A stretch of 64,000 nucleotides of DNA from contig OZ287708.1 of NCBI GenBank assembly GCA_965649825.1, positions 89,101 through 153,100 of the forward strand, read 5' to 3'. Numbering within the stretch: the first letter of the stretch is position 1; the number at the start of each line of letters is the position of its first letter. The stretch is from Penicillus capitatus. Its lineage: Eukaryota > Plantae > Chlorophyta. Under the pieces are notes generated by a model. That model had not been told where the DNA came from and searched no databases. It saw only the letters and a program-made list of their open reading frames with translations. Shown here piece after piece: positions 23,114 to 57,312 of this stretch. Position numbers and translations under genes: made by a program.

Positions 23114-25669
23114 TCAGTAGTTGCTGCCATTCTTTCGATGGTGCACTGCTGAGACGTCGCCTTTGTTTAGCACCTCCCCGCCTTCGACCGTTGCGTAGAC
23201 GATCCAATGATCTCCAGCTTCCATGCGTTCCTTTACTGTACATTCCACATAGGATACGGCATTGTGAATGACCACACAGCCTGTCTCTTCGCACACCTGT
23301 CACATCAATCATTCAACACACGACTCTCACGATCCGTCAGGAGGCGACACCTCAGTGACGAGGCCATCAAATCGATTCTGACCAGGATTGAAGGGCTTGA
23401 GCATATGTTTCATGATATCCAGTTCTTTTCCTTCTGCAAGGATATTCACATTGAAACGATTGCCCTCGAGTAAGACGTTCTCGACGGCACGATCGCGTTT
23501 GACAGCGATGGTGAGTCCAGGTGGATTGAAACTTGCTTGCGATACCCAGCTGGCCAACATGCCACTCTCTGCATCGCCGTCTTTGCCACTGATGACACAC
23601 AGAGATCCAACGATGCGACCAACGGCTTGAGAAGCGTCTGAGGCGGTTCGAGAACGCGACACGCCGATGGATTGCTTTTCACGTTTCTTTAGATTCTTCT
23701 CGACTTCTTGAGCCAAATCTGTGCCGCTCTCTTCGCATACTTGGAGATCCTGTAGATATATAGAAAGGGTATATGTGGAGTGTATGGATGGATGTACTTT
23801 GGCGGTCGGCTTCATTTTGACACGGATGGCATCGAAAGCAAATTTGAATCCGGCATCTCTCAGACGTTGCTCCATCTCGTCCACAGCCTCACCACTCCAC
23901 CCAAAGCTTCCAAATACACCACAAGGCAACTGTCTCGCCTGTGTATTACCGACGATTAACCCCAGGACTGTCTGAACCTGCGTCGGCAGGTGACCCCCAA
24001 GTGTCGGGCTCCCTTCACAAAGAGCCGTGTCAACCACGAGGGTGTTAGTGTAAAAAGCATACCGATGATGAATCCATCAATTTCGCCGAGCGCCTTTTCG
24101 ACGTCCGACAGTTCGGATGTCTCCAAATTGAATGTTTGGACTCCTAGTCCACTCTTCTGCATACCGTGGCTGATGGCCTACATCTCTGTATGTTGACGGT
24201 CCATGCTTCTGAACTCTGTCTCACCTGAGCAAGAGCAGCAGTGTTGCCATAGGCACTTGCATAGAACACAGCAATGGTGCCTTTTGTACTGCTCTGCTTC
24301 TTGATCCACTCGGCATAGTTCTCAACGAGTTCGTGTAGTGAATTTCGCACAACGGGGCCGTGCATTGGACAGATACCCGCTATTTCCCGTATCGCTTCTT
24401 CTTTCTCTTCCGTCTCCGATGCAGCAGGGGTCACCCACGACACCAGTCGACCAAACCAGTCCTGGATCGCTGGCAGCATTGAAGCAGATGCCGTTGAGAA
24501 GTTCAGTTGTTCCAGAGCTTTGGCGACCTGTAGAGCTGATGGCGCCAGCATGGTTTCAAAGAAATACTGCCAATCTGTCCCATACGTCTGCCATCCTCCG
24601 ACATCGAAAGCTGTATCCTGAACACATTGCCCCAGATCAAACCTCGTAAAACTCCGAAAGTGACGAAACAGATACCTTCACTTCTGTCAGTTCAGATGCC
24701 ACATGAGCAGAGAAGAGTTCAGACGAGAACAGAATCTTGCGTTGGGGAATGTAGATGGCAAGCATGTCTGGCCATCGAGGTGTGGCAGTCCGAATAAACT
24801 CAAAGTCCATATTCTCAGCAATCTTGATGGAACCACCAATTGGCGCCGCCATCAGTGTGCACTTGTTATAGATATCCGATTCTGTTCCCTCGTTATCTAA
24901 TAGCCAAAACAGAAGACAGTTGTGGGCGTGTGCCGTTCCAGTCATGCAAAAGGAGTTTGTTACCAAATGCGTTGCGCAAGAAACGGATTGCAGCAGCACT
25001 GGCAATGATATCAACTGGATTTGATCCATCTGCGTCGATCAAATGGATCAAAGATCTCAAAACGGGCAATGCATCGGGTTGAAGATGCGTAAGAACGATT
25101 TTGCCAATCCTCTTCGCCGCAATCGTTTTCTGCAGCGTCAAAACTTCACACATGAAGAAAGCACTCAGAAATGAACGCCGTTGTGATATCAGATGTACGA
25201 AAAGGAGATGAAAATGGCTCCGATGGTACATCGATGAGGACAGTCGCCTCTCGAGTGGCTCCCTTCACGAGATAAGCATTCTCAGTCGTGCCGCGTTTTC
25301 TCCCATACTCCACTTCGAATTTGAGACGCTCGAGACAGCTGCTGCGAATCGCCACCAGCTCAGAAGACACTTCGAATACTGATGCATTCCCCATCTGCTG
25401 TACCGCTCCTTTCTCCTGCACCACCCGAGTGCCCTCATGACTCGCCGGCAGTGCCGACGGCGGCTCACTTGTGTCGTTATCGACGACGTAGCTTCGCAGA
25501 CAGGATGGGACAAAATCGATCGCACACGCGAAAACTGTGGCTGAAAAGGAAGGGCGGCACCGTGCCGTGCAGGTGGCGTGTTTCGCGTTCCCGTGCGTTC
25601 GAACATTCCCGTCTTCGCCGTTCTCATTCGTTCTGCCGAAATCTGAGGTGTGATCGACGTTGTCGTCAT
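23114..25669 (-). CDS. FLVA: Chloroplast flavodiiron protein, FlvA/Flv1-type (beta-lactamase-like + flavodoxin + flavin reductase domains)
   Basis: RLKFEVEYGRKRGTTENAYLVKG, YASAYGNT, GVFGSFGWSGEAVD, SWVSQASFNPPG, GDHWIVYA. The diiron motif is non-canonical (THLQPDA for HxExDH; FSSELFSAH). An S/T/R-rich transit-peptide-like exon starts at 25669. Confidence 0.9.
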
Positions 25670-25904
25670 CGTCTTGGACCAAACCGGAACGGTACGGCAG
25701 ATACACGTCTGCCTTCGCTGTCGCCTCATCGGAAACAGCAGTGCAGAAATGTTTTAACCAGTCGATGCGGAATTCGGGGGTCTTTTGGGATAGGGTCAGT
25801 TTCTGTCAGGGTCTTTCGCCATCGCCATCATCCAAACGTCTCTTCCTCAAACTCTGTTCCCGGCGGAGACGCTTTGGAAACGTGTTCTCTGTTCGAGACA
25901 TGAT
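25670..25904. promoter_or_regulatory. Short divergent intergenic region; putative bidirectional promoter for FLVA and the CBM20 gene
   Basis: 235 nt between head-to-head start codons. No specific motif identified. Confidence 0.4.
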
Positions 25905-37992: not shown

Positions 37993-38991
37993 CTATTTTC
38001 CAGAGTAGGACTTGTGGCTCTTGTACTTGACGGTCTCCGACATGAAGCTGGACAGGATGAGACAGAAAACCAGCGTCAGGGCTGTTCTGGATGACAAGAC
38101 ACCTTGTGCGGGACATGTCGCTGTCAGTGCATTGTTTCCTTCTTCGTCGTGATGATGAGAATGATGCTCAGATGGCAGATACCCATCCAACAGGACTAGA
38201 CTAAGTGAAATTGATTGCGAGAGAAAACGGAAAAGATACTTCTCTGTATAACTCGTCAGCATAATACCAAGTGCCGCCGTGTGTGTCAGGAGAGAACTCG
38301 ATAAGGTAAAGGATGACGGGGCAAGAATTCCAGAGGTCATAAGCAGACACACATGCAGCACGGCATTTACAGAGGAGAGGACGATCGAGGAAGGCAGGGT
38401 TCTCTTCACGGCACATCGGTTAGCACACACAGCCAGAAGTAAACCAAGAAACGTCCAGAACTCGATGCCAGATGGAATCTCGGGTATCCAGTTAAAAACT
38501 ACACGGGAGACAGCTGCCAATAGAAAAGAGACATAGGTTATGTTTGGCGAATCGAAGAGCGCCTTCTCCAAACGATGCAGCCACCGGGACAGCATGTTTC
38601 TGGTATTGGAATGCGCGGGTGCAGCATTATCTGCTCTTGAACGTTCTTGTTGTTCTTCGATAAGCGTCGTCACTGGTGCAGGACGACTCGTTCCCCCTAA
38701 CGGTGTTCGGAATTCAACGTTTGAGTGAACCTCGTGGTCCGCGCCGGTTCCAGCGAAGAGTTGGTCGTTACACAATATACTGCGCGCTGCTTCGGGAGGC
38801 CCCAGCAACCCGTTCTTTAGCGCGCCCACCAGAGCCGACACGCCAACAGCTTCGCACACCTCGTCGGGGAATAGAAGAGTAGAGACATCAGCCAGACGCG
38901 CTTCAAGTAATTGCGTGTCTTGTACTGTTGTTTCACCTCCGAGAGGATTTTCCAGCCAGCTTGGTAAATCGGCCAACGCAGAGGCGGCCAT
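37993..38991 (-). CDS. Unknown intronless membrane protein (332 aa) with ~5-6 C-terminal TM helices and a His-rich loop
   Basis: Uninterrupted ORF; hydrophobic segments after about residue 150; EHHSHHHDEE loop before the last helix. Confidence 0.65.
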   Translation of the reverse strand: MAASALADLPSWLENPLGGETTVQDTQLLEARLADVSTLLFPDEVCEAVGVSALVGALKNGLLGPPEAARSILCNDQLFAGTGADHEVHSNVEFRTPLGGTSRPAPVTTLIEEQQERSRADNAAPAHSNTRNMLSRWLHRLEKALFDSPNITYVSFLLAAVSRVVFNWIPEIPSGIEFWTFLGLLLAVCANRCAVKRTLPSSIVLSSVNAVLHVCLLMTSGILAPSSFTLSSSLLTHTAALGIMLTSYTEKYLFRFLSQSISLSLVLLDGYLPSEHHSHHHDEEGNNALTATCPAQGVLSSRTALTLVFCLILSSFMSETVKYKSHKSYSGK

Positions 38992-39121: not shown

Positions 39122-42100
39122 ATGGGATGCCTCGAATCAAAAATCCAGGCTGTACAGGCGGGAGAAAACTATGAGGAGTCCGTACAACGACCATTAATAC
39201 AATGGACGGGTGCCGAGGTCGAAACCCTATTGCGACAACATCCCGTGCTGGAATCGTACGCGTCGACGGTTCTCAAAGTAATTTTGAACACTGTGAAATA
39301 TGCTTGCATCACTCCGAATCGTCTTCCAGGGAACAGTGGGCGCCGTGTTTGCTCAGATCACAGACGACGTGCTGAAACAAGCAGGTCGAAGGGTTCTTGT
39401 CGGGCTCTCTGATAAAGAAGGCGTCCCTGTGTCGGTGTAGGCGTTGACAATGGGCTGCATCGAATGCAGATTCTGCATCTGCGAGATGAACAGCTGCAAA
39501 TGGAAAGCCCATCGACATCTCCTCTGTCACCTCCTCCTCTTCAGCATTCCTTGTTTCTCGATTGCGAGGAGGGGAGATGGATTTGATCATCCGTTATGTG
39601 TAGGACGGACCGTGAACTGAGCCTGTCTCCGATCCGGACTCAGAACTCCTCGAACAGTCATTCGACGCAGTTGAAAGACAGAGGCTTCGAATCCGGTTCC
39701 CTGTCTGGCAAGAAGAAAGCAGATGTGGCAGATGTCGAAGGAGGGAAGTACATGGCCATGATGAAAATCCTGCCCAGTGGCAATCTCATTCGGTGAAGCT
39801 TCTCTCTCCGACGTCCCCTCTCGCACACATCATCTTATCTCCTCATCTGCAGCGTGGTGGGAGAAACGTTGCCTCTCGAGGCCAATGGGATCGCCAGTCG
39901 CGTCGTACAGCTCCATGAACTCCACAGCAAGGCGCTGTACAACACGGATAACTGTCGTCGATTTGTCAAGCGCTGTTGCCAGATGCAGAACCTCTTCGCG
40001 ACGAAGAAGCTGCAGCAGACTGTTCATAATGATGCTGTCATCCGCCTGATCGAAGAGATTCTAGATGACGCTCTCGAATTTTTCTCCCTTTTCTCGCAAC
40101 GGTGCTCAATCGTGGACGGAAAGCAGGAATCCTGAGTGTCTGTTTCGGCAGGGGATGGCTTGAACGGGTCCTCCACAGGCCCCGTGATAAGCAGGAGTTT
40201 CAAGAACTCGATCGGCGATTGATCGCTGCGTGTCTGAACGACAAGCACCTCACGATCTCCGATGTTTCGGCAACTAACCTGCAGCAGACTCCGGTACGCG
40301 GCTGCCGTCTGCGGTACATATTAAGCAGCGTATCACGATCAGATGTACACCAACGATACGAGGCGGCTGAGAAACGCCTTGTTCGACGTGGGCGGCATTG
40401 AAGCCTTGAGACAAGGCCGCGCTGCCGTCGAAGAATTGTCGGAGTACTTTCCGGAGGCGAAGCGATCTCAGCTGGACGACAGTATGCAAGGCGAAGTGGA
40501 GCACTACGCTATGCTCATCGACACGTGCAGTGCACACACTGTCATTCGGCACCCGGAATTGCAGGTACAACCGCCAAGACGCGCGTCGCTGACGTCTTAT
40601 ACAAAGGCATTCTGGAAACGACACTTTTCTCACAAGGATAGAATCACATGGGACGAATTTTGGCAGTGCTTTCCGCAGATTCTTAAAAAGTAGGCGTCTT
40701 TTTTGACGATCCCTTCCGATCTGATCTATTTGATCCAGTGAAGAGTGTCCCGTGCTTTGTGAACACATGAAGCGTTCACAGAATCGCGAGATCATACAGA
40801 TGTACATGACGAGGGCATTGCCTCAATTGCTATCCGCGACGGAGGTCGATTTCCTCTTTGAACCGCATCTGACGGTCGAGCAGACACTCCAGAAGCTCCT
40901 GTCCGTTTCATCTCAGCTCCGCGAACTGCCTTCAGCATCTGGAGATTTGAGCATCTCCTTAGGCGAAGGACCCATCAAGGACGGCATCGCTTGGAACTTT
41001 CCTCCGCCGGTATTGCAGAGGAAAACATGAGCACTGTTAGATATTCCCTCAAAGGTTGCGAATGCCATGGTGAGAGAAGAGCTGCTTGTCCAAGTGCTGT
41101 TCGGGGCACAAGATCAAGGCACAAAGATCATGCAGTTAACAGGCACCGCTGGATGCGGCAAATGCGTCTTCGCCAATCAGCTTGCGAGGTGTCTGCTTTC
41201 GTTCGGTCAATGGACAGAAGCTTATTGGATCGATCTCACCGGCATCTGTTCTCACACAGCAGCAGGTTTGGGCACATTGGCAATCACGTGATTCAGGAAA
41301 CGGGTGGTCAGGTTATCATATCATGAGTGAAATGGGCGTCGTGTACGAGGCGGCAGATCTAAAATTTGTTCAAGGCTTCCTGCAACGTCGACAGGGATCA
41401 CTCGGCATCGTCGTCACCGGAATCGATGCCCTTGTGTGCAGCCGCGATGACGAATCTCGACTATTAGATTCATTGGAAAACCTGACCAATGCTGGTGAAC
41501 ACGTGCAGATCGTTATGCTATCACATACGAAGTTAAGGGAAACGCGGGCGTGCATGGTTCATTATGAATTGCCCCCTTTTTCATTGGCTCTGTGCAGCAA
41601 TTGGATGCAGACGCAACTCGGCAGGGCTGCTCCAGAGAAAGAGGAGATAGAACAGTTGATCATCGAGATATCGCACCCTCTGTGCCTCGGAATGATTTCT
41701 AGTCTGGTCCGTATGGGAGCCATCAGTTTGAAAGAGATTTCTGAAGCCATTGAGAACAAGGCACTATCGCACTTAGCAGATAAAGTCACGTCAGACACGT
41801 TTTCGGCTCTGAAAGCAAAGGAACGCAGGTTCTGAGAATCGGCTATCAGTTTTTCGAGATCCAGATCCTGCAGGTGTTTGCTTGCATGTGTTCTTGCTCT
41901 CGAAGAGGAGTTGCTGCAACTGGCTTGCATGCTTTCGCTTTTCCAAGGGCCATTCAGAACAGAATTTGCCGTGGCTCTTGTTCAGAATACCGACATCGGC
42001 GCTGCGGCAGTTCAGGGCAAGCTGAGAGAACTGCGGAATCGAGGAATTCTCGCTCACAACGAGAATTCAGCAGTTCACAAATTTCATCCGCTCATCCGAA

Positions 42101-44442
42101 CCACTTGTCAGTGTCTGTCGACACATCTAGGTGACTGCTCTCACGATCAAATTGCACAAGAAGAGCTGTTGTCGAAGGTATGAGTCTTGATCAGTCGACC
42201 AAGAGTTTTTTCGACGCCGTTTACAATAAATGCGTCTGGAAAGCAGAACAGATGATAGCGCATGCAACATTTGTCACAGCTGCTTTGCATACTTTGCACC
42301 GAGATCAAGTCCATGTCTACCGATTCATGCAGATGGCGAGTTCAGAGGGTGCAGAAGAATCTCTCGGGACTGTTGAGAAATTTCTGTGGGAAGCCCTTCC
42401 TTCATTGTCCTTCCGACTCAATGCTTCGGCACTCGAAAGTGTGTCTGTCGATCGATTGGTGATATGACCAGACTCTGTCCTGCTTCCAGAATTCTATGAA
42501 GCCTGTCTAAGCATTGCCGAAAAGCTCGGCAATTCGCGATTCAAGATCCGGTGCTTGATTCAAACAGGAGAGATGTTGCGGAATGTGGAACGACTGCAAG
42601 AATCCGAAAATGCGCTTCGAGATGCCTTAGCTCTTTGCTTCTCGCATCTCGAAGATCAGTCGCTGGAAGCAGCGAGATGCTACGAAGGCAAGAGGGCAGA
42701 TCATAAACAACAACACTCATGTCCAGTTGGCTGAAGGTATTGGACTGAGCTGTCTTAAGTTGAAGAAGGTCACGGACTCGATCGATTGCTACGAAAAGGC
42801 AGTTGAGCTATACAAAAGCGTGAAGGGGCAGAGATCTGTGGAGACGGCACAATGCAGTCTGGCACTGGGAAAAGCTCTTGGCATGGGCAAACGTCATGCT
42901 GATGCCTACGAGCACTGTATTGCGGCGTTTGGCATACTTAAAGACACCTACGGCCCAGAACATGTGCTCGTTGCACGGGCGTATGCAGACAGCGGCGCTC
43001 AGCTGAAGCATATGAAGAGGGAACGAGATGCCGAGGCTGCATACAGGCATGCCCGTTTCGACGTGGGAACATTCTTGTATGTTCGGCCTAGGAACGCAAT
43101 GGAGGTGCTGGAGAAGATTTTGGGGCCGTCACATCCAGAGGTCGCTAGTGTGATCGTCGAATTTTCGACAGTGCTACGGGCGATGAAGAAACTGAATACA
43201 GCAGAGTCTTTGCTGCTCACCGCTTTACAAATCAGGGAATCGAATTTTGGCCCCTTTCATCCAGAAACAGCGTCGTGCGTCCAGCTTTTGTCTGCACTCT
43301 ACAAAGTACATGCTTTCGGCCGTTCTGATCTTGTCGACCGCTGTGCTTCGTGACAGGCAATGCTTCGATTTGATGAGGCTGCCAATTTTGCTTCCCGTGA
43401 TGTTGAGTTGCGTAAGCGCATGTTTGGTCCAGCCGACGGCGAGATCACGGCGGCATTGATGTCGCTGGTCCTCATTCTGATCGAGAAAGGAGAGTAAGCA
43501 GTGACACTTTTTCGTGCGGGATGACAATGTACAGCTCAGTTACTCAGGCGCCTACAGTCATTGCAAACGAGCATTGAGTATACGAGAGAAGCAGTTCGGC
43601 AGCTGCGATATAAGAGTCGCCCAAACATGTAACATCATGGGAATCATACAGAGACAGCTGGGACGATATGAAGAGGCAAAAGCGATGGTCGAGCGTAGCT
43701 TGAGCATTAAAGAATCCAAGTTTGGCGACCGCCCGCATCCCGAGATCGCGGGTTCTTTAAATGGTCTAGCCGAAATCGAGAAAGAGCTCGAACAGTAAAC
43801 GCAATGGCGGATACTGAGCAACAGCCTGCTTTGGCCCTGCAGGTTGGCTTCGGCCGAGAAGAACAGCAGAAAGAGTGTCGAGATTCGAAAAAAAGCACTT
43901 GGCGAAAATCACCTCTCGACAAGCCTCTCCTTGCAGACCCTGGCGTCCATACTAATGGAAACAGAGAGCTACGAAGAAGCTGAAGACTACATTCGCCAAA
44001 GCATTCGTATTAGGTATGTCCTCTTACATCCTAATTTCATATCGCTTCTCTTTTCCTGCGACAGAGAAAAGCATTTCGGAGAAGACAGCTTTCAGTGCAT
44101 GCAAGCATATGATATCCTGGCGGGCATCTTGTGTAAGAAAGGGCGTTTGGATGAGGCAGAGGAGAAAGCCCACACGTCCATCGACACAAAGATCAAGATC
44201 TTGGGACACAACCATCCAGAAGTTGGGCGTTCACTCGTTGGTATGTCTTTACAAGATTTGTCTGCGACAAAACGTCGAGGGCTTTGCTTTTAGTCCTTGG
44301 TGGCATTCTCATGGCTCGTTCAAACATTGCAGCTGCAAGACAAAAGATTCAACGAGCTTTGAGCATTTTTACATGTTCGTTTGGGGAGGATCATCCAAGT
44401 ATCAAGAAAACTGAACAGATTCTCGAAGGAAAGAACTTGTGA
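39122..44442 (+). CDS. NLR-like STAND protein: N-acylation motif - SAM - MLKL-like 4-helix bundle - EF-hand-like - NB-ARC - winged helix - TPR array
   Basis: MGCLESK start. SAM: WTGAEVETLL...ITDDVLKQAGVDNGLHRMQIL. 4HB: LHELHSKALYNTDNCRRFVKR...LDDALEFFSLFSQRGWLERVLHRPRDKQEFQELDRRL. EF-like: AFWKRHFSHKDRITWDEF. NB-ARC: WNFPPPVANAMVREELL, P-loop GTAGCGKC (41142-41165), SHPL, FHPLIR. TPRs of the LGPSHPEVA type. Introns checked through about 43350 and in the last exon restore frame. Confidence 0.88.
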
Positions 44443-46574
44443 GTCAGTGTCATTATCGCTTTTCTAAAAGAGATAGTATGGGAAAACAGAACTGCAACTG
44501 TACGATCATCAAACGACATTTGATATCAAGCCTTCTTCGCTAAAGAATACAGAAAACGAAACGACGACGCGATCCAGGTAGAAACGCGTTAGCGGTACAA
44601 ACACTGTTGTCTGCTTTGCTTTTAGATCCATTAGAGGCCGAAAGACGCAAGAAAACGCGACCGTGCCCCCGCGAAACTGCGATACCGGAGAGTTGATTTT
44701 TCTGTTTACATTTTTCACACACGGTGGCTTCTGTCTTCCAAACCAGACTGTTTTGCTCCTTGTTTAACGAAAAAGTGTCCTGCAATGCTGTCCGGCTTCC
44801 GAAGTGTTCCGCTAAATCCGCAGATTGTATTCAAATAAAAAGCATCGCTATAGATCGTTGTGCCGAGTGGCATGGAAAGGAGAACGTCGAAAGTGAACGA
44901 CGATCTTGAAGCCCCAATCACCGCTCACATTGACGCTCAGCGATACTCTAAATGCGAAAGACGACCGTTCGCGGGTTCTCGTTCGTGACCAGCAAGCCGC
45001 ATTTATCGTCTGCGAATGTAGAATGCATGCGACCTTCTCGATCCCCTTCCCATAGCAAAACCGAAAGAGATCTAAGGATGAAGAAGATTGCGAAGATATT
45101 AATGTTCTTCGATTGGGGCCTAACTCGTCACAATTAAATCCACTAGACACAACTAAGCAAGATGAAGAAAACATTCAGGTGACAAATAGTAGCTCAATTC
45201 CAAAACCCATTGGATGTGCCGCGGGAGTGGTGATGAAGAAACATTGGCTTTCGATCCTTAAGGGCAGTATGACATTTGAGAATAGAATTCCAACGTCTTG
45301 ATTTTCTGGATGATTTACCGCTAGGAGGGAAAACGAGTTGTGATAGCTAACTGATTTCTAAAAGGTTCCTCCGAAGCATTGACTGAACTTGTTTTCACTG
45401 AATCGAACTTTAGTACTCGGCGATTAAAGTCCATTGGCTCTGAGTCGAAGAAAGTAAGCGGGTGATTTTGCCAGAAAACGTAGAAACAAGTACCACACAG
45501 AAGCTATGCACCATTTCAGAGGATTCGGACGCTTGGTGATTGGTACCTAATGGCACTCTGTATGATTCTTATGCTCAACGAGTAAAGCACATTGGCATTT
45601 GTTTAGCGAAATTCACTAAAAGGGTGTATGTTTACCTCTTTGAGGGGTTTTGGGGATGGACGAATATGTTTCGAGTTATAAGCTTGTTTGCATGCCAGTA
45701 AGGCGTCATGTAGCTATCTAGGTATCTAAACAGACCTGAATTTTTTACGCCTGCAATTGTAAGTATTAACGTTGCAAACGAACGTCATTCGTACCCATGT
45801 AACAATGGTTCTTGCCTTCCTTTGCTGCACACAATCTGAAGGAAATTGACAGCGAGCATCTAAAGTAATTTGCTTCATAAACTCTGTCTCCAGATGTGTA
45901 CGATTATACTCGATCGCGACTTTCTCGCTAGAAGTTTGTTCTCGTGATTTCAGGATTACCAACCTTGAATCCTGCGTCTTCTTCTCAACGCTATTCTGCC
46001 TCGTTCCGTGTAGTGGATGGAGGACCCAAAAAAGAAGATGGTCTTTCTGAATGCTTGAATTCACCGACGGAATGCAGATTTCGAGATCGCTGTTCTGCTT
46101 TCAATTCCACAGGACGCAGAACATATTCGACAGAATCCGTTGTCCAACGTATACACAGGTTCCACTTGACCGTATACAACCTGATAAACCGTATAGCGTG
46201 TCGAACGTTGCCTGTTTCGCTTTTCCAAAGACTGAAGCTCAAATACCGCAACTTCAAATTTTCCTGCTGGTAAATCTTCAGACCGTTATCGGCCCGTACA
46301 CTCAAAACACGCTTCGTCGTATTCGTGTTATCGCCCTGTTCAATACGCGAATGTGTCGAGAGACTTGATGCACGACAATTTTAACGTAGATCTGATGTTG
46401 GTGACGCGCTTGCTCCGTACTGTTTCCGCACCAGACGCATTCTTTGTTCCATTTCGAATGCGTGTCATTTCTTTCGCTTTCGTTTAAGGTTCTCGGGTAT
46501 TCGTTATTCGTGTACGTGGCAAGACGCACTGTTCCCGACAACCATCGCTTTCGGTCAAGTCAAATTTGTTCTGT

Positions 46575-49500
46575 ATGAAGTGGACATTGTTGATTATATT
46601 GCTGTCCGCTGGTTCGTCCTGCCAAACAGTGGACACAACCAAGTTCTTTGGAAAATGGAACGATAAACTGCGCGATATCGCGGATGAAATCACGGCGCGT
46701 TTATCTGCAACCGAAAGCAGAAATTGCGAGTGCAGTTACTACGCTTGTGGAGAAAGGCCAGATAAAAACATAACGGAATGTCTCAAATCAGACCACAAAG
46801 AAAAACTGGTCTGCGGCGTCGATCCCTGTGGACATATGAATGTCTGCTATTCTTCAATGTGTGGGCGAATGCCAACTGTTTGCTTTGTAGCTCAGCATAA
46901 ATCGAACATTCGTTCGCATACCACCTTCTGCGACACCGGGCAGTTACGGCAACGCAATCAAGAGAGACATCTGCTTAACTCAGGTGCCTACATGCAGCGC
47001 TTTCACTTTGCACGACCTTTTTCAGGGTTTGGAAGACGCATTCAAAAATGCCAGAGATTACACGAGTGGGTTTGTTCCGTGGACTTACTTTGGGGCAGCA
47101 GAGGCAGGAATATTCGTGTACTGTGCATTTTGATGCAAATATGACATCAGAAAGTAGGACTGGTTTTAGGGGCTGGCCAGGAAAGCCGCGAGAGCAGGTG
47201 AAACTTGGAATATGTCGAGACTACGATCCAGTAACAATGATTTCTAGTGTTCACATCTCTCTAGACGAGTCTGTGTCTAGAGAGTTCGCCCTTGGTGGAG
47301 GCGAGCAGCCTGGCATCCGAGGAATATTGTGATTCTCGTCGATCTCACGACATCCATGAAGGACAAGATCCGAGGAACCGAGAAGTGGAACATGACTCTA
47401 AACATCGTTACACGCTTCTTGGAGACTCTGTCGGAGGACGACGCAGTTCAGATTGTGGGTCTGAAGAGTGAACCCAAAGTGCTGATGGGTCCGGACAGGA
47501 CGATGCCCGCCACGGAGCAGACTGTCGAGAGGTTGACAAACCGGTTGAGAAGGTGGGAACCCGATGAAGGCGACTCTGTTGTGGATATCGGCAAAGCGAT
47601 CGATCGAGCCATGGATCTGCTGCATGCCAACAAGGACCGAGGAATCACAAAATGCGAGAACGTATCCCACTGCCTTCTCTCTTTCTCGAGATGACTGTTG
47701 CTGTCTAGCACATTCTGCTGTTTTCACACAGAAGGGACTGCAGCCATTCCATCAAACGAGACTGCGCGTCCAAGATGTTTGTGAACGAGGATGGAGAATC
47801 CGTCTCTCGACCGGTCGAATCGACAATCGGCGTCGTGGAAGATATCATAGACAGGCAGAACAAGGATTCGCTCAGAAAGAAGCCAATACTCTTCTCCTAT
47901 ACCCTGTCCCCAAAGGCAAACGGCATGCTGAGCCAGTTAGCTTGCCGGCTGGATGGAATCCACGTCGATCTAGAGCGTGAGCTCGAAAAAGGTGGCATCC
48001 GGATTCACGTCAGAATACTCTTGCCATGAGTTGTATCTTCAGGTATCCTGGACCCTCTCCATCTGATGCGTGGGTACTTTCGAAGAGCAGCGTTGACGGT
48101 GGCCAATGCCACTGGAGGAAAGATTTCCGTAAGTAACATGTACAACGATGACTCTGGGTTAGGAAGAATGAACACGCTCACGATGCCGGTCTTCTATAAG
48201 TCGCATTTTGACTGCCCGCCAATTCATTATGGGGTCATCGGAGCCGACATGCGACAATCCGACTATCGAGCCAACGGAATTGTAGCAGATTCACTTAACT
48301 TCGAGAATGATGTATCTAACTGGAATGAACATGTCACAGAGTGCAAATCCATACGAGTCACTCGTTGTCATATGCAAGTCCTGAGGGAGAAGGAAGGGCA
48401 ATGCGTCTATCCTCTGGAAAAATCAGGAGACGAAAAATGCTTCGAGTTTAAGAAGCACATCTACTACGTCGAAGAAAAAAGAGCGATGAAGTTGGAAGAA
48501 GCCAAAGAGTACTGCCTGAGTCTAAGTGGGCAGATGATCGCACCGCGGGATGTTGAGGAGAGGCGTTTTCTGGCTACCTTGATGCCGCCGGACGGCGCGT
48601 GGATCAACATCACTCACGATGACGAGATCGACTGGAAGTGGCCAGACGGCGAACGACTTGATCCAGAAGAGAGGAAGAGCATCGAGCGCTCCTGCGATTA
48701 TCCCCTCCCTCCCGGATTCTACATGGACCCTCGAGACTACGATAACAACTTTCAGTGTGTACAACAGCTTGAACGAAAGACAGTCGTCTGTCAGTTCGAC
48801 GCAGGACAGATCCCGAAAGTTTGCCGATCCAACGTCGTGCTCTGCATTCTGGTATTTCGATGACGGTTTGTTTTGCTCCAGATTGTGGTGTCTGTCACAG
48901 AAGATGACTTCGTGGACACGATACGTACCTGTGATGCGGAGGACTGTCTTCTGACGAACATACCGTCTGATGGCTACACGTCGCTGCAAGAAACTGACAT
49001 ATTCTGCAACTGGAATATGTTAGTAGATAACGATTTCTCCAAAATTGGCTGTTGTTCGCCGGAAGACCTGATCAGGGAGTGTGACGCGGTGGTAACACGC
49101 ATCATTGTTGTAGTCTTTCGCAGTTGATGTGAGTGGTTGTAGGAAGTGAACGACATGGGATTCAACGTAACAAATGAGATCAAAAATGATTCCAGCAGTG
49201 GGAATACCACGGTTGTAGTTGCAGTAATTATTGTGGCCATCGTGGTGGTGATCTTAGCCACACTGTGCTTCTGCTGCGCCCGTCGACAAAGGTCCTCTTT
49301 TGACAAGCCGAGTCATAAGCCAATCCGTTTAGCCTCTGCGGATTACTTAAATCGCCGCCTTGATGTAATGATCGGAAATCGTTCCGGAAGACCTGGGTCT
49401 ATTCAAAGTACATGCAACATTTGCTTGCAACAGAATCTCAGTTTATGTGCAGGTCCATTTGCGGTTGCCTCGCCGAAAGCTGCTGGATCAATCGGAAAGA

Positions 49501-50517
49501 GACCGGAATTGGTGGTCAACATCGAGGTCAATATTCTCGACAATGGATGGGAGAAGATCGGAGGCTACGGCCGCGTCCGACAAGGGGAGTATACGGACAC
49601 CACAGGGAATGTGCACAAGGTGGCCGTCAAGTTCGTGGACGCATTGGCACCTAACGCCGCGTGGGAGGCCCTCAAGAACGAGTTTGACATCCTGGCTTCC
49701 ATTCCTCTCCATCCGAACATCGTCAAGCCCATCGGCGCCCACTGGGGGGACCGCACGCAGAACTCCCAGCGCTACATCGTCGAAGAGCTGATGCACACCA
49801 ATCTTGGAGATCTGATGATCGACACGAGTACTCCGTCTTATCCCGGCAAGACCATGGTGTACAAGGACTGGATCAATATCTTCGTCGGCATCGCTCGTGG
49901 TCTGGAGCATCTCCACCAGCATAAGATCATCCACTTCGACTTGAAACCTAGAAACGTCCTCCTAGACGAGGACATGAACGCCAAGATTGCAGACTTCGGT
50001 TGCTCCAAGTCGAAGTTTGATACCTACATCGAACTCAGCAAGATGGGCGGAACTCCTCCGTACCTGGCACCGGAGTGCTGGATGCTCTACTACGCGCAGA
50101 ATGTCAGAACGGAGGTGGCGAGAGTCAAGATCGACGTCTACAGCTTTGGCGTGATCATGTGGGAGTGTTTAAACGGAGGGAACAGTTTGGCGACTGCGTT
50201 GTACAAACGCAAAAGCACGGCATCTCCTCAGGCCTCTGCCAATCCGGACAACATCGAAATTGTCCGCGAGAGCCGTTCGTCTGGTAAGCAGCCAAGTGAT
50301 AGACCTACCAGTGTTCTTCATCTTCTCTTCTGATGTAGAAGGAAACCAGCAGTGGGAGATCCAGTACTATCTCAGCGAAGAGATCCCTGAAGGCTTGAGG
50401 AACTTGGTCACACAGTGTGTCCGTGTCGATTTTGATTTCCGACCGACATGCGGGCAGATTCTGGACACCCTGGTGCCTATGCTTGACGAAGAGTGGGCAA
50501 ATCATCCAGTTCCTTAG
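46575..50517 (+). CDS. Receptor-like kinase: signal peptide - alpha2delta-like dCache/vWA - C-type lectin domain - TM - non-RD TKL kinase
   Basis: Signal [19 protein letters not shown]|RVRPWW...[12 protein letters not shown]...[32 protein letters not shown]...GVIGADM. CTLD: [12 protein letters not shown]...[14 protein letters not shown]...[29 protein letters not shown]. Kinase: [35 protein letters not shown]. Confidence 0.9.
47275..49010 (+). repeat. Left arm of a ~1.7-kb inverted duplication (partner 54884-56626)
   Basis: Long runs identical to the reverse complement of 54884-56626, including introns. By eye about 90% identity or higher. Confidence 0.95.
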
Positions 50518-53500
50518 AATCTTCTTGATTTGGTTATCTTCGTGCATTGAGATCGCTGCTTTATTTCTTAGACAGGTTGCCTTCTCCTCTTGTACAGAAT
50601 GCACTGAAGTGTGGAAAGTGGTTTCTTGCAGACGAAGCGGTAGATATGTTATGCTCGAAAATAAACACGACAAAGCCCATTTGCGTCTTCTTTAGAGAGT
50701 TGTTTGTTTTCAAGATCCATTGAGTTTTTTTACATCATGTCTCGCTTATTGTACTGCAGGATATACCCAGAAGTGAAACACCTTTCGCCCGATTTAAGGC
50801 ATTAGCATTTTCAATCTTCTCTCCATTATGTGCAGAGAAGAGTAGTCAATGTAACCATTCCATTCAGTCCCCTCTGTATCGATGACCTTTCCGGGATTGC
50901 ATGAACTGTCGACTGTACAGACTAGCACAATCATTTATTTGAACGTTGAAAGTATCACTGATAATGAAACTCAGTGAAAGGATTTCAATCGATTAGACAA
51001 ATAAACGATTTTTGTGCTAATCATTATGATTCCTGTTTGCGCAATGAACGAGAACAGTTTGTGTCAGATCACTGGAAAATGCGCCAAATTGCAGATCGCT
51101 ACATTGTTAGGCTATTTGTGTTAAACGCTTATCAGTAGCACCATTGTATACTCGGTTGAGACGCTTCTTTTTTGCGCGCTGGGCGTGAGAGATGTAAAGA
51201 AAAATAAGTGAAGGACGTAAATGACGCAAAAGATGGGTTCAGATCCGAATGGACGGCGTTGTTGTTCAGGATTTTTTTGGTTTGGACTCACGTCTCCTGT
51301 CTGGGAACGACGCCCGTGGCAATGACGAGAAACATGCCAGCTGTTTTGCTCAGAAGTGGATCTCAGATTTTACACATGCTGTTTTGTGCGATTTAAATGC
51401 ACTCCACGCGTTCACGAAGCGTCGAGTTCCGCTGCGGCCTGAGTGAGCATTTTGGTAATCGGGTTAGGTAAGGCACCAACACAACTCAGCGTCGAAGGCG
51501 ACGCGATCAATAGCAGAAGAACATCTTCAACTCGGATGCAACTCAAAGACACGAGATAGTTACAAGAAGAATACCGTCCTTCAATATTCAGAATGGTTCA
51601 GGAATCGTGACTTTAAACACTTAGAGTCAAGAAACTTCACGAATTCATACGCGACTGCCCAATAGTTATAAGGGACTTGGGAGAAAGCTATCCATCAGCC
51701 GCTTTCAATGGTTTAGAGGAGCCTTAACTGTTAAAAATCCGTAACAATCGCTATATTTCGCAGTTGCGTCAGGTATACTAACCTCCTACAACACCTATCT
51801 GCCAGTTTTGATGGTTCACTTCATGTCTCGCAGAGGTAGACTTCGAAGAAGTAGAAATGCATTATCTGGTCTGCGAACTGGATGACGAATCAGACTGATA
51901 TGGTTGTCACTAGGACGTTCTAAAACATTCAGACGGAGGAGATCTAGCAAGTTTGATGGTACATAACCGTATTGCTATATGAACATTCGCTGTTTCGTTT
52001 CTTGTTGTTTCCGAGAAGCATGATAATAATAATAATAAAGTTGGTGCTTCTTACATCCCCTTTTCAAGTTAAACATCAGAGGAGCGAGAAGCATGATGAT
52101 TGAATCACAATCTGAGGGTCACGTAGCCGCGTGGTAGACGACAATGGACACATTTAGTTCTTAAAATCCTTTCTCTAAGCGGTCTGTAATGTGTCACGCG
52201 TTGTCTTCTAACTTCGATTTAGCAAGGGTAGTTTTTCCTATACAAGCGTTTTAAAGCGAGAAGAAACTGGATTTTAACAAAAGGAACAGAAAAACGTTAA
52301 AAAGGACGGGAAAAGACTCACTCTTGGTACCTTAAGAGTAGGGCTTTTTGCGAAGCTAGAACCATGGACGAAATGCAGCAGAAAATGTGGGTCACAATTC
52401 GTAAATCGGTTTCCATTACGCGCTCTCACCATTAAGGTCGATGGTTCTTTTCGCTTGTATCAGGAAGAATACAACAGAATCAATTGTAAAGCAATACAAA
52501 TTGCATTCATCTGTTTTGTGTCACCCATTTTTATGTGTAACGGCACAGAAAAGATAAGAGGTGTGTCGGACTAGAAAGGCGGTTGGTTATAAAGCTGCCA
52601 AAGCAGAGGACGATGAAAAAGCTGACGAAGTTTAGAATCGGGCGTGTTGTACGACGTGGATGAGCAATGATCTCTTAATCACCGAATATAATTTATGCCG
52701 ACGTGTGCGTCTCGGAGAGGGCTGGCACGGATCTATGCTTTGCCTTTCACGTGTCTCGAAAGCGAGCTATATGTTGGCTTTTATTACGGGTTCTAATTTT
52801 GATGTTTGATATGACTACTGCAGCAAAAAGAACGGACAACATAGAGACAGGAAACGTAAAGTTTAGAGCATGTTTTCGATTTTAGGAGGCGTCCTGGTTG
52901 CACGCTATGGTCATCGATCTCCGTCACCGAACTTTGTCGACGACTACCCGTGTAACTCTAGAGCGTTTTTAACGACCTCGACCTTTAATTCAAATTGTCA
53001 AGTCCTACTCGATCGGCTAACGTCGCACCCAAGAAGAATTCATTGAGCCTGAAAGCTTCATTGTTCGCGAACAAGCGTTTCTTTAACGCAGATTGTAAGA
53101 AAGAAATCGCATCGGAGAAGCACCGTTATTTGGCCTTGACATCCGTTGGCGAAATTCTCCGTTGCATACAATTAAGAGACCGCACTGCACTGTGTGTTTG
53201 TGACGAATCGTTTTAACGTTTTCGTTGTTACACCGTTTCGTAGCGTAGACTCGTTATCGACCACTTCATGAGTTCATCGTTTATTTTCAACTAAGCGTTG
53301 AATTTAGTAAGAGGTGAAGGCAAGATGTGTTTTCCAAAGTGTAAAGGTGTGGTCACCTATGGTCATTTAGATTTGATTCTATTACTTTTCACAATTCGAC
53401 GATGGTGTAGAGATGTATTGATATTTGATGACTGATTGCTAACTAGGTATCGAGGTTTCCGGCGAACTTACAACAATTGCTATTTCTCGATTAAGAAAGT

Positions 53501-54790
53501 ACTGTGCAGTACTTGAGAATGAAGATTCGAAAAAACTCGGCTACTTCAACGCGTTGCAAACGCCTCAGTTAAACGCGACGTTAAAACAGCGACAATAGGA
53601 ACAGGCAAGAAATAGTGTGATTGATATTGTGTTACCATACAAAAACGTAAACCGCGAGTCAAAAAGGGAGTACCTCTGTCCAAAGCGGTAAAGACGAATC
53701 TCGATTCATATGATTGACATCTGCAATTAACATCTGCCTGCGTTCATAGCTCAATTCAGAACTTAGTGTACACACAAACCTATCCTCAAAACGTTTATCC
53801 GAGTCGCAAAAAAACAATCTGCCGTTCACTCGAGGACCCATCTTCGAAAGTAGTTTGAATAGCTACAGCCAACTGCATTACTCATTGGGGAACCAGTTTC
53901 TAAAACGCTAGCGTGAAACCCTAGCCATTGATGAAAGGTAAGCCCATCACTAAGCGCCAAGACGCTTGTCATGTTTATCTTCCGAAGATTCTCGTCAAGA
54001 CTCTCGATCTTTGGCGTTCTCTACTCTTTTGCAAACCAAAACGTTAAGAAGAACTTAAAAGCTTCGGGGATGATCATAGAGCATATCAAACCGCGACTCT
54101 ATGTAAATCATCATGGTGGGGTGCAGAATAAGAACGGCCGTGAGACAAAGCATTAGATAATTCGACCGAAGAAATCGGGTCGGGATCAAAGTAGCCGGAT
54201 GCAGTGAGGCGCCATTGTTGACGGACAAAGGAAGTAAAGCGAACGGCGTCAGGTAAAACAGGAGGCAGAGGTGGGAAACGATAAGGTGCGACGGAGGTGA
54301 AGACGATGGCGAGTTCGGTCGGCAATGGATTCAGATGCATCGGATGAATGGCCCGACGTTCGAGGAGAATTGAGCATCGATTGCCCAGCCAGTCGCATAA
54401 CCGTGGACTACGTCCAGAAAAAAACACTTCAAGAGGCAACCAAAGCATCCCGGAGCATGTTTTCGACCATGAAAACCAATTCGACAGTCACATCATTTTT
54501 GTGTAGAAGAATGTCCGCTGTGGCATCTTTTCTATACTGTAACTCTTGTTGATTGTTTTAAGCGTCGACGATAGCGCCGAGGTGATTAAAACCAGCTCTC
54601 ATTAAACACCATGTTTAGCGTTTATCGTTGGTTCTTTTCGCGATAGAGTGAGAACGGGTGATCTTTTCGTCGGTCAAATCACTTGCACTGGCAAAACATG
54701 GCATACGTGCATTGTTCACACATTTACGTCAGTATGATTCGTGAGGTGAAACGAAGGTTCAAAACACAGTTTGTATCGCACGGTGTTGAT

Positions 54791-57312
54791 TCACTTTTCA
54801 CTTGCTTGCACAGAACACTCGCTGAGTGGTATTTTGGAGCAACAGGCGAGTTCATTATAGTCATAGTCGAAAATGTGTCTCTTGTTGCAGAATATCTTAG
54901 TTTCTGGCAGCGACGTGAAGCCATCAGACGGTATGTTCGTCAGAAGACAGTCCTCCGCATCACAGGTACGTATCGTGTCCACGAAGTCATCTTCTGTAAC
55001 GGACACCACTCTCTGGAGCAAAACAAACCGTCATCGCCATACCAACCAGAGTGCAGAGCACGACGTTGGATCGGCAAACTTTTGGCCTCTGTCCTGCGTC
55101 GAACCGACAGACAACTGCCTTTCTTTGAAGCTGTTGTACACACTGAAAGTTGTTATCGTAGTCTCGAGGGTCCATGTAGAATCCGGGAGGGAGGGGATAA
55201 TCGCAGGAGCGCTCGATGCTCCTCCTCTCTTCTGGATCAAGTCGTTCGCCGTCTGGCCACTTCCAGTCGATCTCGCCATCGTGAGTGATGTTGATCCACG
55301 CGCCGTCCGGCGGCATCAAGGTAGCCAGAAAACGCCTCTCCTCAACATCCCGCGGTGCGATCATCTGCCCACTTAGACTTAGGCAGTACTCTTCGGCTTC
55401 TTCCAACTTCATCGCTCTTTTATCTTCGACGTAGTAGATGTGCTTCTTAAACTCGAAGCATTTTTCGTTTCCTGATTTTTCCAGAGGATAGACGCATTGC
55501 CCTTCCTTCTCCCTCAGGACTTGCATATGACAACGAGTGACTCGTATGGATTTGCACTCTGTGACATGTTCATTCCAGTTAGATACATCATTCTCGAAGT
55601 TAAGTGAATCTGCTACAATTCCGTTGGCTCGATAGTCGGATTGTCGCATATCGGCTCCGATGACCCCATAATGAATTGGCGGGCAGTCAAAATGCGACTT
55701 ATAGAAGACTGGCATCGTGAGCGTGTTCATTTCACTCAATCCGGAGTCGTCGTCATACATGTCACTTACAGAAATCTTTCCTCCCCCAGTTGCCTCGGCA
55801 ACCGCCAACGCTGCTCTTCGAAAGTACCCACGCATCAGATGGAGAGGGTCCAGGATACCTGAAGATACAACTCATGGCAAGAGTATTCTGACGTGAGTCT
55901 GGATGCCACCTTTTCCGAGCTCACGCTCCAGATCGACGTGGATTCCATCCAGCCGGCAAGCTAACTGGCTCAGCATGCCGTTTGCCTTTGGGGACAGGGT
56001 ATAGGAGAAGAGTATTGGCTTCTTTCTGAGCGAATCCTTGTTCCGCCTCTTTATGATATCTTCCACGACGCCGATTGTCGCTTCGACCGGTCGAGAGACA
56101 GATTCTCCATCCTCGTTCACAAACATCTTGGACGCGCAGTCTCGTTTGATGGAATGGCTGCAGTCCCTTCTGTGTGAAAACAGCAGAATGTGCTAGACAG
56201 CAACAGTCATCTCGAGAAAGAGAGAAGGCAGTGGGATACGTTCTCGCATTTTGTGTTTCGCGGGTCCTTGTTGGCATGCAGCAGATCCATGGCTCGATCG
56301 ATCGCTTTGCCGATATCCACAACAGAGTCTTCCTCATCGGGTTCCCACCTGCTCAACCGGTTTGTCAACCACTTGACTGTCCGCTCCGTGGCGGGCATTG
56401 TCTGGTTCTGACGCATCAGCACTTCGGGTTCACTCTTTAAACCCACAATCTGAACTGCGTCGTCCTTCGACAGTGTCTGTAAGAAGCGCGTAACGATGTT
56501 CAGAGTCATGTTCCACTTCTCAGTTCCTCGGATCTTGTCCTTCATGGATGTCGTGAGATCGACGAGAATCACAATATTCCTCGGATGCCAGGCTGCTCGT
56601 CTCCACCAAGGGCGAACTCTCTAGACGTGTATCTCTTTGACAGTGAATTTTGGACAGCGTAAATACCGGATCATATTCGCGACACTCTCCTGGTCTTTGT
56701 TGCTCTCGAGGCTTTCCTGGCCACATTCTGCAAGCACGTGTTTGTGTTTTAGTACACATGATGCATATTACATTAAGACTCCAGTCTCGGATGCACCGAA
56801 ATAGGTCCAAGGAACAAATCCACTTGTGTAATTCCGTGCTTCCATAAATGATTCTTCCAGTCCCTGTGAAACGATCTAGTAAACGAAGACCCTGATCAAA
56901 CAAACCTGTGTCAGACAAACGTCTCTCTTGATCTCGTCGACATAGCTCCCTGCTGCAGTAAAGGGCGGAGTGAGGACATATGCACGTTGCGTGCTGAGCT
57001 GCTCATCGTTTCTTCATTAATTTACGAATGAAAGCAATCGATACAGACTTGCATGTGACCGCAGTGCGGAACGCCACAGTCGAGTTTTCCGACGTGGCCT
57101 GACTTGAGGCATTCCGTTAGAGAATTCGGCGGTCGCTCTCCGCAAGCATGGTAGCTGCATTCACAAGTTCTCTTCTGGGTCGTATTGAGTCGCGACGTAA
57201 GTTCGTTCGCCAAGCTCTTCATCCGGTTACTCCAGTCTTCAAAAAACTCTTCCGTATCTGTTCTTGCGCGACACGCGCTGAAAAGAACCAGTAGAAAGAA
57301 AAAAAATCGCAT
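54791..57312 (-). CDS. Kinase-less, TM-less paralog of the receptor ectodomain (signal peptide - dCache/vWA - CTLD); secreted protein or truncated copy
   Basis: Signal MRFFFFLLVLFSACRA. Same exon structure and motifs (YDP|RVRPWW, DLTTSM, MYDDDSG, GADM, CTLD). The frame ends ...CCSKIPLSECSVQASEK* and no TM or kinase sequence is visible downstream. Confidence 0.8.
54884..56626 (-). repeat. Right arm of the ~1.7-kb inverted duplication (partner 47275-49010)
   Basis: Reverse complement matches 47275-49010 from GTCTAG|AGAGTTCGCC to ATTCTGCAAC. Confidence 0.95.

Follow-up and report, generated by a model that had tools for sequence, protein, structure and literature searches.

Three adjacent genes in one 64-kb stretch of DNA (the whole stretch is hereafter called the window) raise the question of whether they act together as an immune surveillance module or are neighbours by gene order. 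The genes, here termed A, B and C, extend from position 39122, the ATG of gene A (MGCLESK...), to position 57312, where the minus-strand gene C has its ATG. An initial examination of the letters alone (the sequence-only reading) had described them as an NLR-like executor, a non-RD receptor kinase and a secreted paralog of the ectodomain of that kinase, and had joined them into a linked surface-plus-intracellular surveillance module. Curated gene models and domain matches confirmed three adjacent genes with receptor architectures at this location. A, B and C are separate transcription units, each with its own flanks, and the reading we favour, at a probability of roughly 0.55, is that B is a receptor with C as its soluble decoy and that A is a neighbour not linked to them.

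Spliced gene models were built with our own exon-chaining script, followed by hand curation against P0001 (for gene B), P0002 (for gene A) and the genome of a relative. P0001 is an intronless metatranscriptome homolog of B (a JGI transcript, 42% identity). P0002 is a Caulerpa lentillifera homolog of A (EukProt) and the closest named homolog of this gene, in line with the algal origin assumed before and pointing to a siphonous, Bryopsidales-like green alga. The relative is represented by a 959-kb contig (ENA ERZ26696514) with a nucleotide divergence of 13–20% from the window; its copies of B and C are referred to as B' and C'.

Gene conversion between genes B and C

Gene B encodes a predicted type I receptor kinase, whose ectodomain the sequence-only reading had assigned to an alpha2delta-type Cache/VWA unit with a C-type lectin-like domain. 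The VWA part of this assignment was borne out: VWA_2 scored above the Pfam cutoff, the single B sequence matched alpha2delta-1 with E=2.7e-8 (phmmer, aa 62-236), and a five-sequence profile reached E=1.6e-15, aligning positions 88-308 with residues 131-338 of alpha2delta-1 (the last part of VWA_N and the greater part of VWA). Besides alpha2delta, no other VWA protein in the Protein Data Bank (PDB) scored below E=1 with the B profile. The Cache part, in contrast, was not demonstrable, as the Cache-like stretch is colinear with alpha2delta but below threshold (-2.3 bits) and has no Pfam Cache match. An AlphaFold2 (AF2) model of the ectodomain was poor (predicted local distance difference test, pLDDT, 54 overall and <50 in the Cache-like stretch), and a Foldseek search with this model confirmed the VWA domain only. 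The C-type lectin-like domain was recovered as proposed, with Lectin_C at 34–36 bits against a cutoff of 22.6 and PDB matches to Ly49A and CD23 at E values of 1e-4 to 1e-3.

The kinase of B has complete catalytic motifs, namely HFDLKPRN, with Phe before the catalytic Asp, DFG and APE. HFD is kept in B, B' and P0001, and thus in three species, in agreement with the proposed non-RD character, and the ratio of nonsynonymous to synonymous substitution rates (dN/dS) of the kinase is 0.05 in comparison with the relative. Based on its motifs and conservation, B is predicted to be an active non-RD receptor kinase. The best PDB kinase matches were SOBIR1 (4e-20), EGFR (9e-20), FERONIA (2e-19) and RON (8e-18), together with MET, suggesting that the domain is about as close to plant receptor-like kinases (RLKs) as to animal receptor tyrosine kinases. 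Homologs of B are rare: single-sequence, profile and metagenome searches yielded only one JGI transcript, giving the VWA-lectin kinase family three sources among billions of proteins.

Gene C carries a B-like ectodomain that ends 30 residues past the last shared cysteine cluster, without a transmembrane helix or kinase, and its reading frame is open over eight exons with splice sites as in B. The ortholog in the relative is likewise intact. Because C has the same stop position in both species and a dN/dS of 0.27 versus the relative, its sequence identifies it as a maintained gene rather than debris, and the description as a secreted ectodomain paralog holds for both species.

The two genes are arranged as an inverted repeat (46719-49010 versus 57171-54884, 87% identical overall), in which similarity stops abruptly at 49010/54884. 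Within this repeat, a tract of ~1.74 kb covering the VWA-to-lectin core is 94–96% identical between B and C (92–100% for single exons and introns; 93.8–100% for introns 5–7), whereas exons 1–4 are only 58–70% identical, with introns that are barely alignable and saturated synonymous sites. B' and C' of the relative share this tract at 87% identity. Window-by-window comparisons of the four sequences revealed opposite patterns for the two parts: in the 5' part, orthologs are 72–87% identical versus 48–69% for paralogs, while in the core the paralogs of one genome are the closer pairs (B-C, 87–99%; B'-C', 69–97%), with orthologs at 65–86%. Trees were constructed apart for the N-terminal part and the core (FastTree, rooted on P0001). 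The N-terminal tree grouped (C,C') with a support of 0.99 and (B,B') with 0.76, and the core tree grouped paralogs by genome, (B,C)(B',C'), with a support of 0.98–0.99. Since orthologs group in the 5' part and paralogs by genome in the core, the B/C duplication is old, and gene conversion has homogenised the binding core separately in each of the two lineages.

Between the two species, dN of the ectodomain is 0.16–0.25 compared to 0.035 for gene A (~5x). In the reading we favour, the B ectodomain would bind an extracellular ligand and switch on the cytoplasmic non-RD kinase, and C, as a soluble secreted ectodomain, would share this ligand; its most probable role is that of a competitor or ligand trap, and a ligand-presenting co-receptor is less likely. 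With B and C inverted and 4–7 kb apart, recurrent conversion copies the ~1.74 kb tract, exons as well as introns, between both genes. As a result of this recurrent conversion, the predicted binding surface drifts fast between species and yet stays matched between receptor and soluble form.

Gene A and its place beside gene B

The protein encoded by gene A starts with Gly2/Cys3/Ser6, a dual lipid anchoring pattern that combines N-myristoylation and palmitoylation motifs. The N-terminus including MGCLES is identical in the relative, and, judged from this motif, the protein is probably lipid-anchored. The following SAM-like region gave two weak matches at the same residues, Pfam SAM_1 (E=0.0086, below threshold) and the liprin-alpha SAM domain in the PDB (E=0.019). 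The DNA at 39447-39490, which encodes HRMQILHLRDEQ at the tail of the SAM-like domain, gives MGCIECRFCICEMN in the +1 frame. Both peptide kinds occur in tandem in residues 9-40 of P0002 (GNCRYCLCETQ...HRMQLLHLRDE), which may point to an error in the exon model or to a short duplication.

For the MLKL-like part, gene A alone stayed below threshold (Pfam MLKL_N, residues 190-280, E=7.7e-4, 19.4 bits versus a cutoff of 27), and a PDB search with its N-terminus alone returned only weak SAM matches; a family profile was needed to reach MLKL. The family was collected by searching the pre-TPR part of the Caulerpa ortholog against 1.8 billion representative proteins, which resulted in 93 relatives. 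Among the 25 long ones, TPR_12 was found in 22, MLKL_N in eight (best 2.9e-11), NB-ARC in six (best 6e-13) and NACHT in four, and AAA_16 and AAA_22 also matched among the relatives. A profile of the shared N-terminal module matched residues ~14-137 of human and mouse MLKL in the PDB with E=5.2e-8. The four-helix bundle plus brace of A is thus, on profile evidence, homologous to the MLKL N-terminal domain at the level of the family, and the MLKL component named in the sequence-only reading is right at this level.

The same profile matched the EF-hand region of the Cbl TKB domain with E=0.009, and A itself matched Pfam Cbl_N2 with E=0.026. An AF2 model was made of the N-terminal module of the Caulerpa ortholog, not of gene A; it was helical with a pLDDT of 84.9. 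Foldseek placed the Cbl TKB domain on top for this model (probability 0.97, E=8e-3), though with a template modelling (TM) score of merely 0.21–0.25, and the MLKL executioner domain reached a TM score of 0.46–0.47 with a non-significant E value of 0.6–1.1. Throughout the family, an MLKL-like bundle is followed by a Cbl-EF-hand-like module with the consensus GPHxxIRHPxLRxFW...VPWxxFWxxFP. To our knowledge, a protein family joining an MLKL-type bundle to such a Cbl-like module has not been described.

Gene A did not reach the gathering cutoff for NB-ARC (E=0.034, 13.9 bits versus 23.5). Its Walker A motif (window ~41135-41160, aa 537-544) reads GTAGCGKC and departs from GxxxxGK[ST]; the motif ends in GKC in the window, its counterparts end in GKS (relative), GKR (Caulerpa) and GRT (P0004, a further relative), and the P-loop of the A subfamily seems, by these variants, to be free to vary. 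Walker B is likewise non-canonical, without hhhhD[D/E] (GIVVTGIDAL in the window, GIIVTGIEAL in the relative, GLVISGLESL in Caulerpa); the wider family has a V.DN..D consensus, and the aspartate position is not conserved across the A homologs compared. A Pfam scan of A revealed no leucine-rich repeats (LRRs), its repeats being TPR_12/TPR_10 only, and these matches are strong, as expected from the earlier mention of TPRs. A and the 25 long relatives share the three-part NLR/STAND layout of MLKL_N-like bundle, P-loop region and TPRs. Of the proposed NLR-like executor, the three-part layout was therefore retained, whereas the NTPase motifs are degenerate, NB-ARC stays below cutoff and LRRs are lacking.

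In comparison with its ortholog in the relative, A has a protein identity of 92.9%, a dN of 0.035 and a dN/dS of 0.09, with the lowest value in the TPR region (0.05). A is under strong purifying selection, unlike fast-evolving sensors, and the fast-evolving character expected of such a locus was not borne out for this gene. TPR repeats of fungal NLRs, in contrast, are under positive selection (PMC4986451). Because of its low dN/dS and the TPR region being the most conserved part, set against the fungal TPRs, A presents an NLR-like layout without the behaviour of a fast sensor. It could act as a separate NLR-like switch with a membrane-damaging executor-type domain, slow-evolving and with relaxed NTPase motifs.

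The order and orientations of A, B and C and both long spacers are retained in the relative. Collinearity with this genome spans 31 to 59.5 kb, including the WD40 gene, and because the whole stretch is equally kept, the adjacency of A, B and C in the relative is uninformative. In the Caulerpa model, the A homolog is joined to a DEAD-box/rhodanese gene lying downstream of it. Searches of a database with at least one Caulerpa protein (P0002) readily retrieved P0001, at 42–47% identity, but no B homolog from Caulerpa. P0002 was also considered as a case of synteny with the DEAD-box gene of the window itself; this was rejected, as the helicase part of P0002, with its rhodanese tail, is a distinct neighbour fused into the model. 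Within the 64-kb window, no further A-like or B-like genes were found. A check of synteny across species, suggested at the outset, thus gave a mixed answer, with the order kept in the close relative along with all neighbours, and with another 3' neighbour of the A homolog in Caulerpa. Species-specific linkage, together with uncorrelated expression and random genome-wide scatter of both families, had been named beforehand as grounds for dropping the module, and the linkage does look lineage-restricted. Adjacency does not exceed background synteny, and the linked module itself was not upheld; the accompanying caveat, that the sequence shows no functional link, stands. The position of A beside B most likely reflects gene order and not a mechanistic link.

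The degenerate Walker A and B motifs, the separate transcription units without a shared promoter, a synteny no stronger than that of the surrounding housekeeping genes, and a Caulerpa A homolog with another 3' neighbour and no B homolog found there all argue against one surveillance module, in which B would be the surface sensor, C a modulator, and A would guard or be triggered by the kinase and attack the membrane in an MLKL-like manner. The strong purification of A, most pronounced in the TPRs, points in the same direction when compared to the positively selected TPRs of fungal NLRs (PMC4986451). In favour of the module, each of the three architectures was confirmed, gene order and both long spacers persist at a nucleotide divergence of 13–20%, and the predicted lipid anchor would put A at the membrane beside the B kinase. 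On balance, such a module appears improbable. A more specific form, a coenocytic-alga circuit in which B, tuned by its conversion-matched twin C, signals to a membrane-anchored MLKL-type A that permeabilises the membrane locally, is quite improbable in our view; if true, it would be a plant-style immune or wound circuit of surface receptor and intracellular executor assembled from animal- and fungus-type parts.

A non-immune role of B and C is possible, though we think it unlikely. Here the two proteins would serve to recognise gametes or self, to aggregate protoplasts and seal wounds in a giant coenocyte, or to perceive an abiotic or nutrient cue, with the lectin-like and VWA domains as adhesion modules. 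VWA and C-type lectin-like domains are indeed classic adhesion modules, and a fast ectodomain joined to a conserved kinase also suits reproductive or self-recognition proteins; no sequence feature separates this role from biotic sensing, and it would alter the ligand, not the mechanism of receptor and soluble form. Cytoplasm aggregation in Bryopsis is driven by lectins, but these are of the F-type and H-type, not C-type (10.1101/2023.11.22.568388). It is very improbable that C is a decaying truncated duplicate whose identity to B stems from one recent partial duplication instead of ongoing conversion: a gene without transmembrane helix and kinase and an abrupt end of similarity at 49010/54884 would fit, but its frame, all splice sites and stop are kept in two species at a dN/dS of 0.27, the 5' exons are anciently diverged with orthologs grouping there, and the core was homogenised separately in each genome, which is impossible from a single duplication.

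Several points weigh against a receptor and decoy pair beside an unlinked A. The decoy role suggested for C is drawn by analogy with soluble receptor forms. The metal ion-dependent adhesion site (MIDAS) of the VWA domain reads DxTxS and not DxSxS (DLTTS in B and C, DLTIS in B' and C', DMSRT in P0001, a D-x-[ST]-x-[ST] variant), and the lectin-like domain has, by eye, no EPN/QPD motif and carries DNNFQC where WND-x-x-C is expected; as judged from these residues, the domain need not imply sugar binding. The B family comprises two genomes and one transcript only, too few for site-level selection. Regarding A, its adjacency to B is conserved in the one relative at hand, the absence of B from Caulerpa was judged from word-indexed searches in a single proteome, and P0002 may be a paralog and not the ortholog of A.

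Gene models, spacers and the surrounding window

Reading frames in the window are interrupted every 100–800 nt, in many cases by a single in-frame TGA. An alternative genetic code with TGA as a sense codon was rejected, because the stops sit in GT-AG introns of 42–60 nt and intron removal restores the frame and matches the intronless homologs. All introns of A, B and C (n=36) measure 42–60 nt (mean 49.1), and 34 are GT-AG; the remaining two, both in gene A, are GC-AG. The one at 43047-43091 must be spliced in the relative because it is GT-AG and 46 nt long there, and the pair presents a GT/GC donor switch between close species. Several short introns are in frame and stop-free or almost so, and are easily misread as coding sequence or stop-codon read-through. 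The in-frame intron in the juxtamembrane part of B was recognised only by comparison, as the frame in the relative survives solely if it is spliced. The coordinates of all features are collected in Table 1.

Table 1 Genes, domains, introns, spacers and conversion tracts of the A-B-C locus (positions in the window; aa, amino acids)
Feature	Position	Strand	Details
Gene A	39122-44442	+	20 exons, 1457 aa; colinear with Caulerpa homolog; intact, same exon structure in relative
SAM-like domain, A aa ~26-88, preceded by MGCLES (Gly2/Cys3/Ser6)	39197-39520	+	two weak library matches
MLKL_N-like four-helix bundle and brace (NTDNCRRFVKRCC motif), A aa ~172-301	39853-40293	+	Pfam and family profile
Helical linker and Cbl_N2-like EF-hand module, A aa ~302-507	40343-41009	+	IRHPEL...FWKRHF...ITWDEFWQCFP
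STAND-type P-loop NTPase and winged-helix region, A aa ~508-920	41055-42438	+	NB-ARC below threshold
TPR_12/TPR_10 (NPHP3/KLC-type) repeats, A aa ~921-1457	42490-44442	+	TPR_12 E=2.4e-24
GC-AG intron in A, 49 nt	42688-42736	+	required for frame and Caulerpa match; GC donor kept in relative
GC-AG intron in A, 45 nt	43047-43091	+	counterpart in relative GT-AG, 46 nt (L002 11725-11770)
Spacer 1, 2.13 kb, non-coding	44443-46574	.	GC 0.44
Gene B	46575-50517	+	11 exons, 1150 aa; predicted type I receptor kinase; guided by P0001; ortholog in relative intact
B ectodomain	46575-49208	+	signal peptide, Cys-rich N-terminus, VWA_N/VWA, Cache-like stretch, C-type lectin-like domain, Cys-rich stalk
Gene-conversion tract, B copy	47275-49010	+	six bases before exon 5 (intron 4 end) to mid exon 8
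B transmembrane helix, aa ~749-772	49209-49280	+	sole hydrophobic stretch in B, Kyte-Doolittle 3.49
In-frame intron, B juxtamembrane, 45 nt	49408-49452	+	47 nt in relative; missing from P0001 transcript
B kinase domain with HFD, DFG, APE	49453-50517	+	Pkinase E=2e-32
Conserved non-coding block after B stop	50519-51177	+	660 nt; 76% identical to relative
Spacer 2, 4.27 kb, between convergent 3' ends of B and C	50518-54790	.	GC 0.427
Gene-conversion tract, C copy	54884-56626	-	same evidence as B copy
Gene C	57312-54791	-	8 exons, 729 aa; secreted kinase-less paralog of B ectodomain

The window is eukaryotic sequence with a guanine-cytosine (GC) content of 49%, which falls between the published values of 45.9% for Bryopsis and 52.4% for Ostreobium (10.1101/2023.11.22.568388), and the 64 kb contained no tRNA or Rfam matches. 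The ATG of A is ~130 bp from the start of a divergent upstream open reading frame (ORF, 37993-38991), and ~270 bp lie between the ATG of C and the stop codon of the WD40 gene upstream of it; on these two flanks, neighbouring genes do sit a few hundred bases apart, as had been noted. The two spacers were likewise found to be 2–4 kb long and AT-richer, compared with a GC content of 0.50 for the three genes and 0.498 for the remaining window. Their ORFs contained no Pfam domains and their sequence no notable tandem arrays, and no kinase remnant was found downstream of C or in spacer 2.

Only the UTR-proximal 110–660 nt (UTR, untranslated region) of the spacers align with the relative. In spacer 1, these are ~110 nt past the A stop and ~150 nt ahead of the B ATG, and the central part of spacer 2 is unalignable; the spacers turn over quickly. 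The conserved block behind the B stop has no 3-base periodicity, and its indels are not in multiples of three. It is probably, to judge by these features, a long 3'UTR or a regulatory element. The B'-C' spacer of the relative (L003 ~13230-13412) harbours a perfect 66-nt tandem repeat without counterpart in the window.

The genes neighbouring A, B and C are housekeeping genes. A very long series of ORF pieces on the plus strand (~11400-22500) has a recurring AFxxW(K/R)xY-type motif every ~30–35 residues, reminiscent of Sfi1-type centrin-binding repeats, and is followed on the minus strand (23330-25800) by a flavodiiron-type gene with flavodoxin and flavin reductase domains, the upstream pieces of which look metallo-beta-lactamase-like. 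Further genes are a DEAD-box helicase (27.9–29.1 kb), a tubulin-tyrosine-ligase-like gene (29.7–30.5 kb), a coiled-coil WD40 gene resembling the flagellar PF20/SPAG16 type (57.5–59.6 kb) and an HD-domain gene (60.7–62 kb).

Relation to known systems

What makes the locus interesting is mainly the concerted evolution of a receptor and its soluble twin, together with the make-up of both protein families. The locus points to three proteins worth testing first in siphonous algae, with any immune role unproven, and B and C offer a testable natural case of conversion matching two forms of one binding surface during species divergence.

Fungal NLRs combine HeLo-like/MLKL-type N-termini with NACHT or NB-ARC and with TPR, ANK or WD repeats (Dyrka et al. 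2014, PMC4986451), and streptophyte algae have NLR-like proteins with CC/RPW8-like bundles and alternative repeats (PMC10952240). Judged from its domains, A is a new member of the class built from an MLKL/HeLo-type bundle, STAND and TPRs, and would extend MLKL-type TPR-bearing NLR-like proteins to chlorophytes. As in the fungal and streptophyte proteins, a four-helix bundle at the N-terminus precedes a STAND NTPase in the centre, and the C-terminus carries 42-residue-type TPRs instead of LRRs. Unlike these proteins, A has further parts, namely the MGC motif, a SAM-like domain and, between bundle and NTPase, a Cbl-like EF-hand; Walker A (GKC) and Walker B (without hhhhD[D/E]) are both degenerate, the TPRs of A are strongly conserved and not diversifying, and its source is a chlorophyte. 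Compared to animal and plant MLKL, the four-helix bundle plus brace is homologous at profile level, but the structural match is weak (TM score 0.46, E 0.6) and no pseudokinase follows the bundle, so that activation would be by a STAND/TPR switch and not by RIPK3-type phosphorylation.

B is a new domain combination, a receptor kinase with an alpha2delta-like ectodomain and a C-type lectin-like domain, and its architecture is not described. Alpha2delta, reported to be metazoan-specific (PMC4202318), provides its best solved-structure relatives, with a colinear VWA_N end and VWA, the W..FG...YD.R.RPW...(K/R)(D/N)..IL.D motif and the LETLS.DD strand. In contrast to alpha2delta and CACHD1, B has a transmembrane helix and a kinase and C is soluble, unlike the accessory-subunit layout, which lacks a kinase and has a delta peptide or GPI anchor; moreover, a C-type lectin-like domain is inserted, the MIDAS site is DxTxS and no Cache domain could be demonstrated. 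No C-type lectins were reported from a survey of the Bryopsis genome (10.1101/2023.11.22.568388), whereas Lectin_C, at 48400-48830 in the window, scores above the Pfam cutoff in two genes of this related alga and in two other sources.

Plant non-RD RLKs of the XA21, EFR and FLS2 type resemble B in having a signal peptide, an ectodomain, one transmembrane helix and a TKL-type kinase without Arg before the catalytic Asp. They differ from it in their ectodomain, which is LRR or LysM and not VWA plus lectin-like, and in the residue in question, which is Phe (HFD) in B. A place of B in the plant RLK/Pelle clade would rest on PDB rankings, in which MET, RON and EGFR score almost equally. Across kingdoms, non-RD kinases have been linked to innate immune signalling (PMC8463890); this link is a correlation and no test of an immune role for B. 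The kinase-less paralog adjoining B is reminiscent of plant non-RD RLKs and kinase-less receptor-like proteins, although C is soluble and plant receptor-like proteins are membrane-anchored. With soluble decoy receptors and concertedly evolving inverted paralogs, the pair has in common a secreted ectodomain copy, C, and conversion between inverted repeats; it differs from them in that C is a separate old gene, neither a splice form nor a shed fragment, and in that conversion is confined to the binding core.

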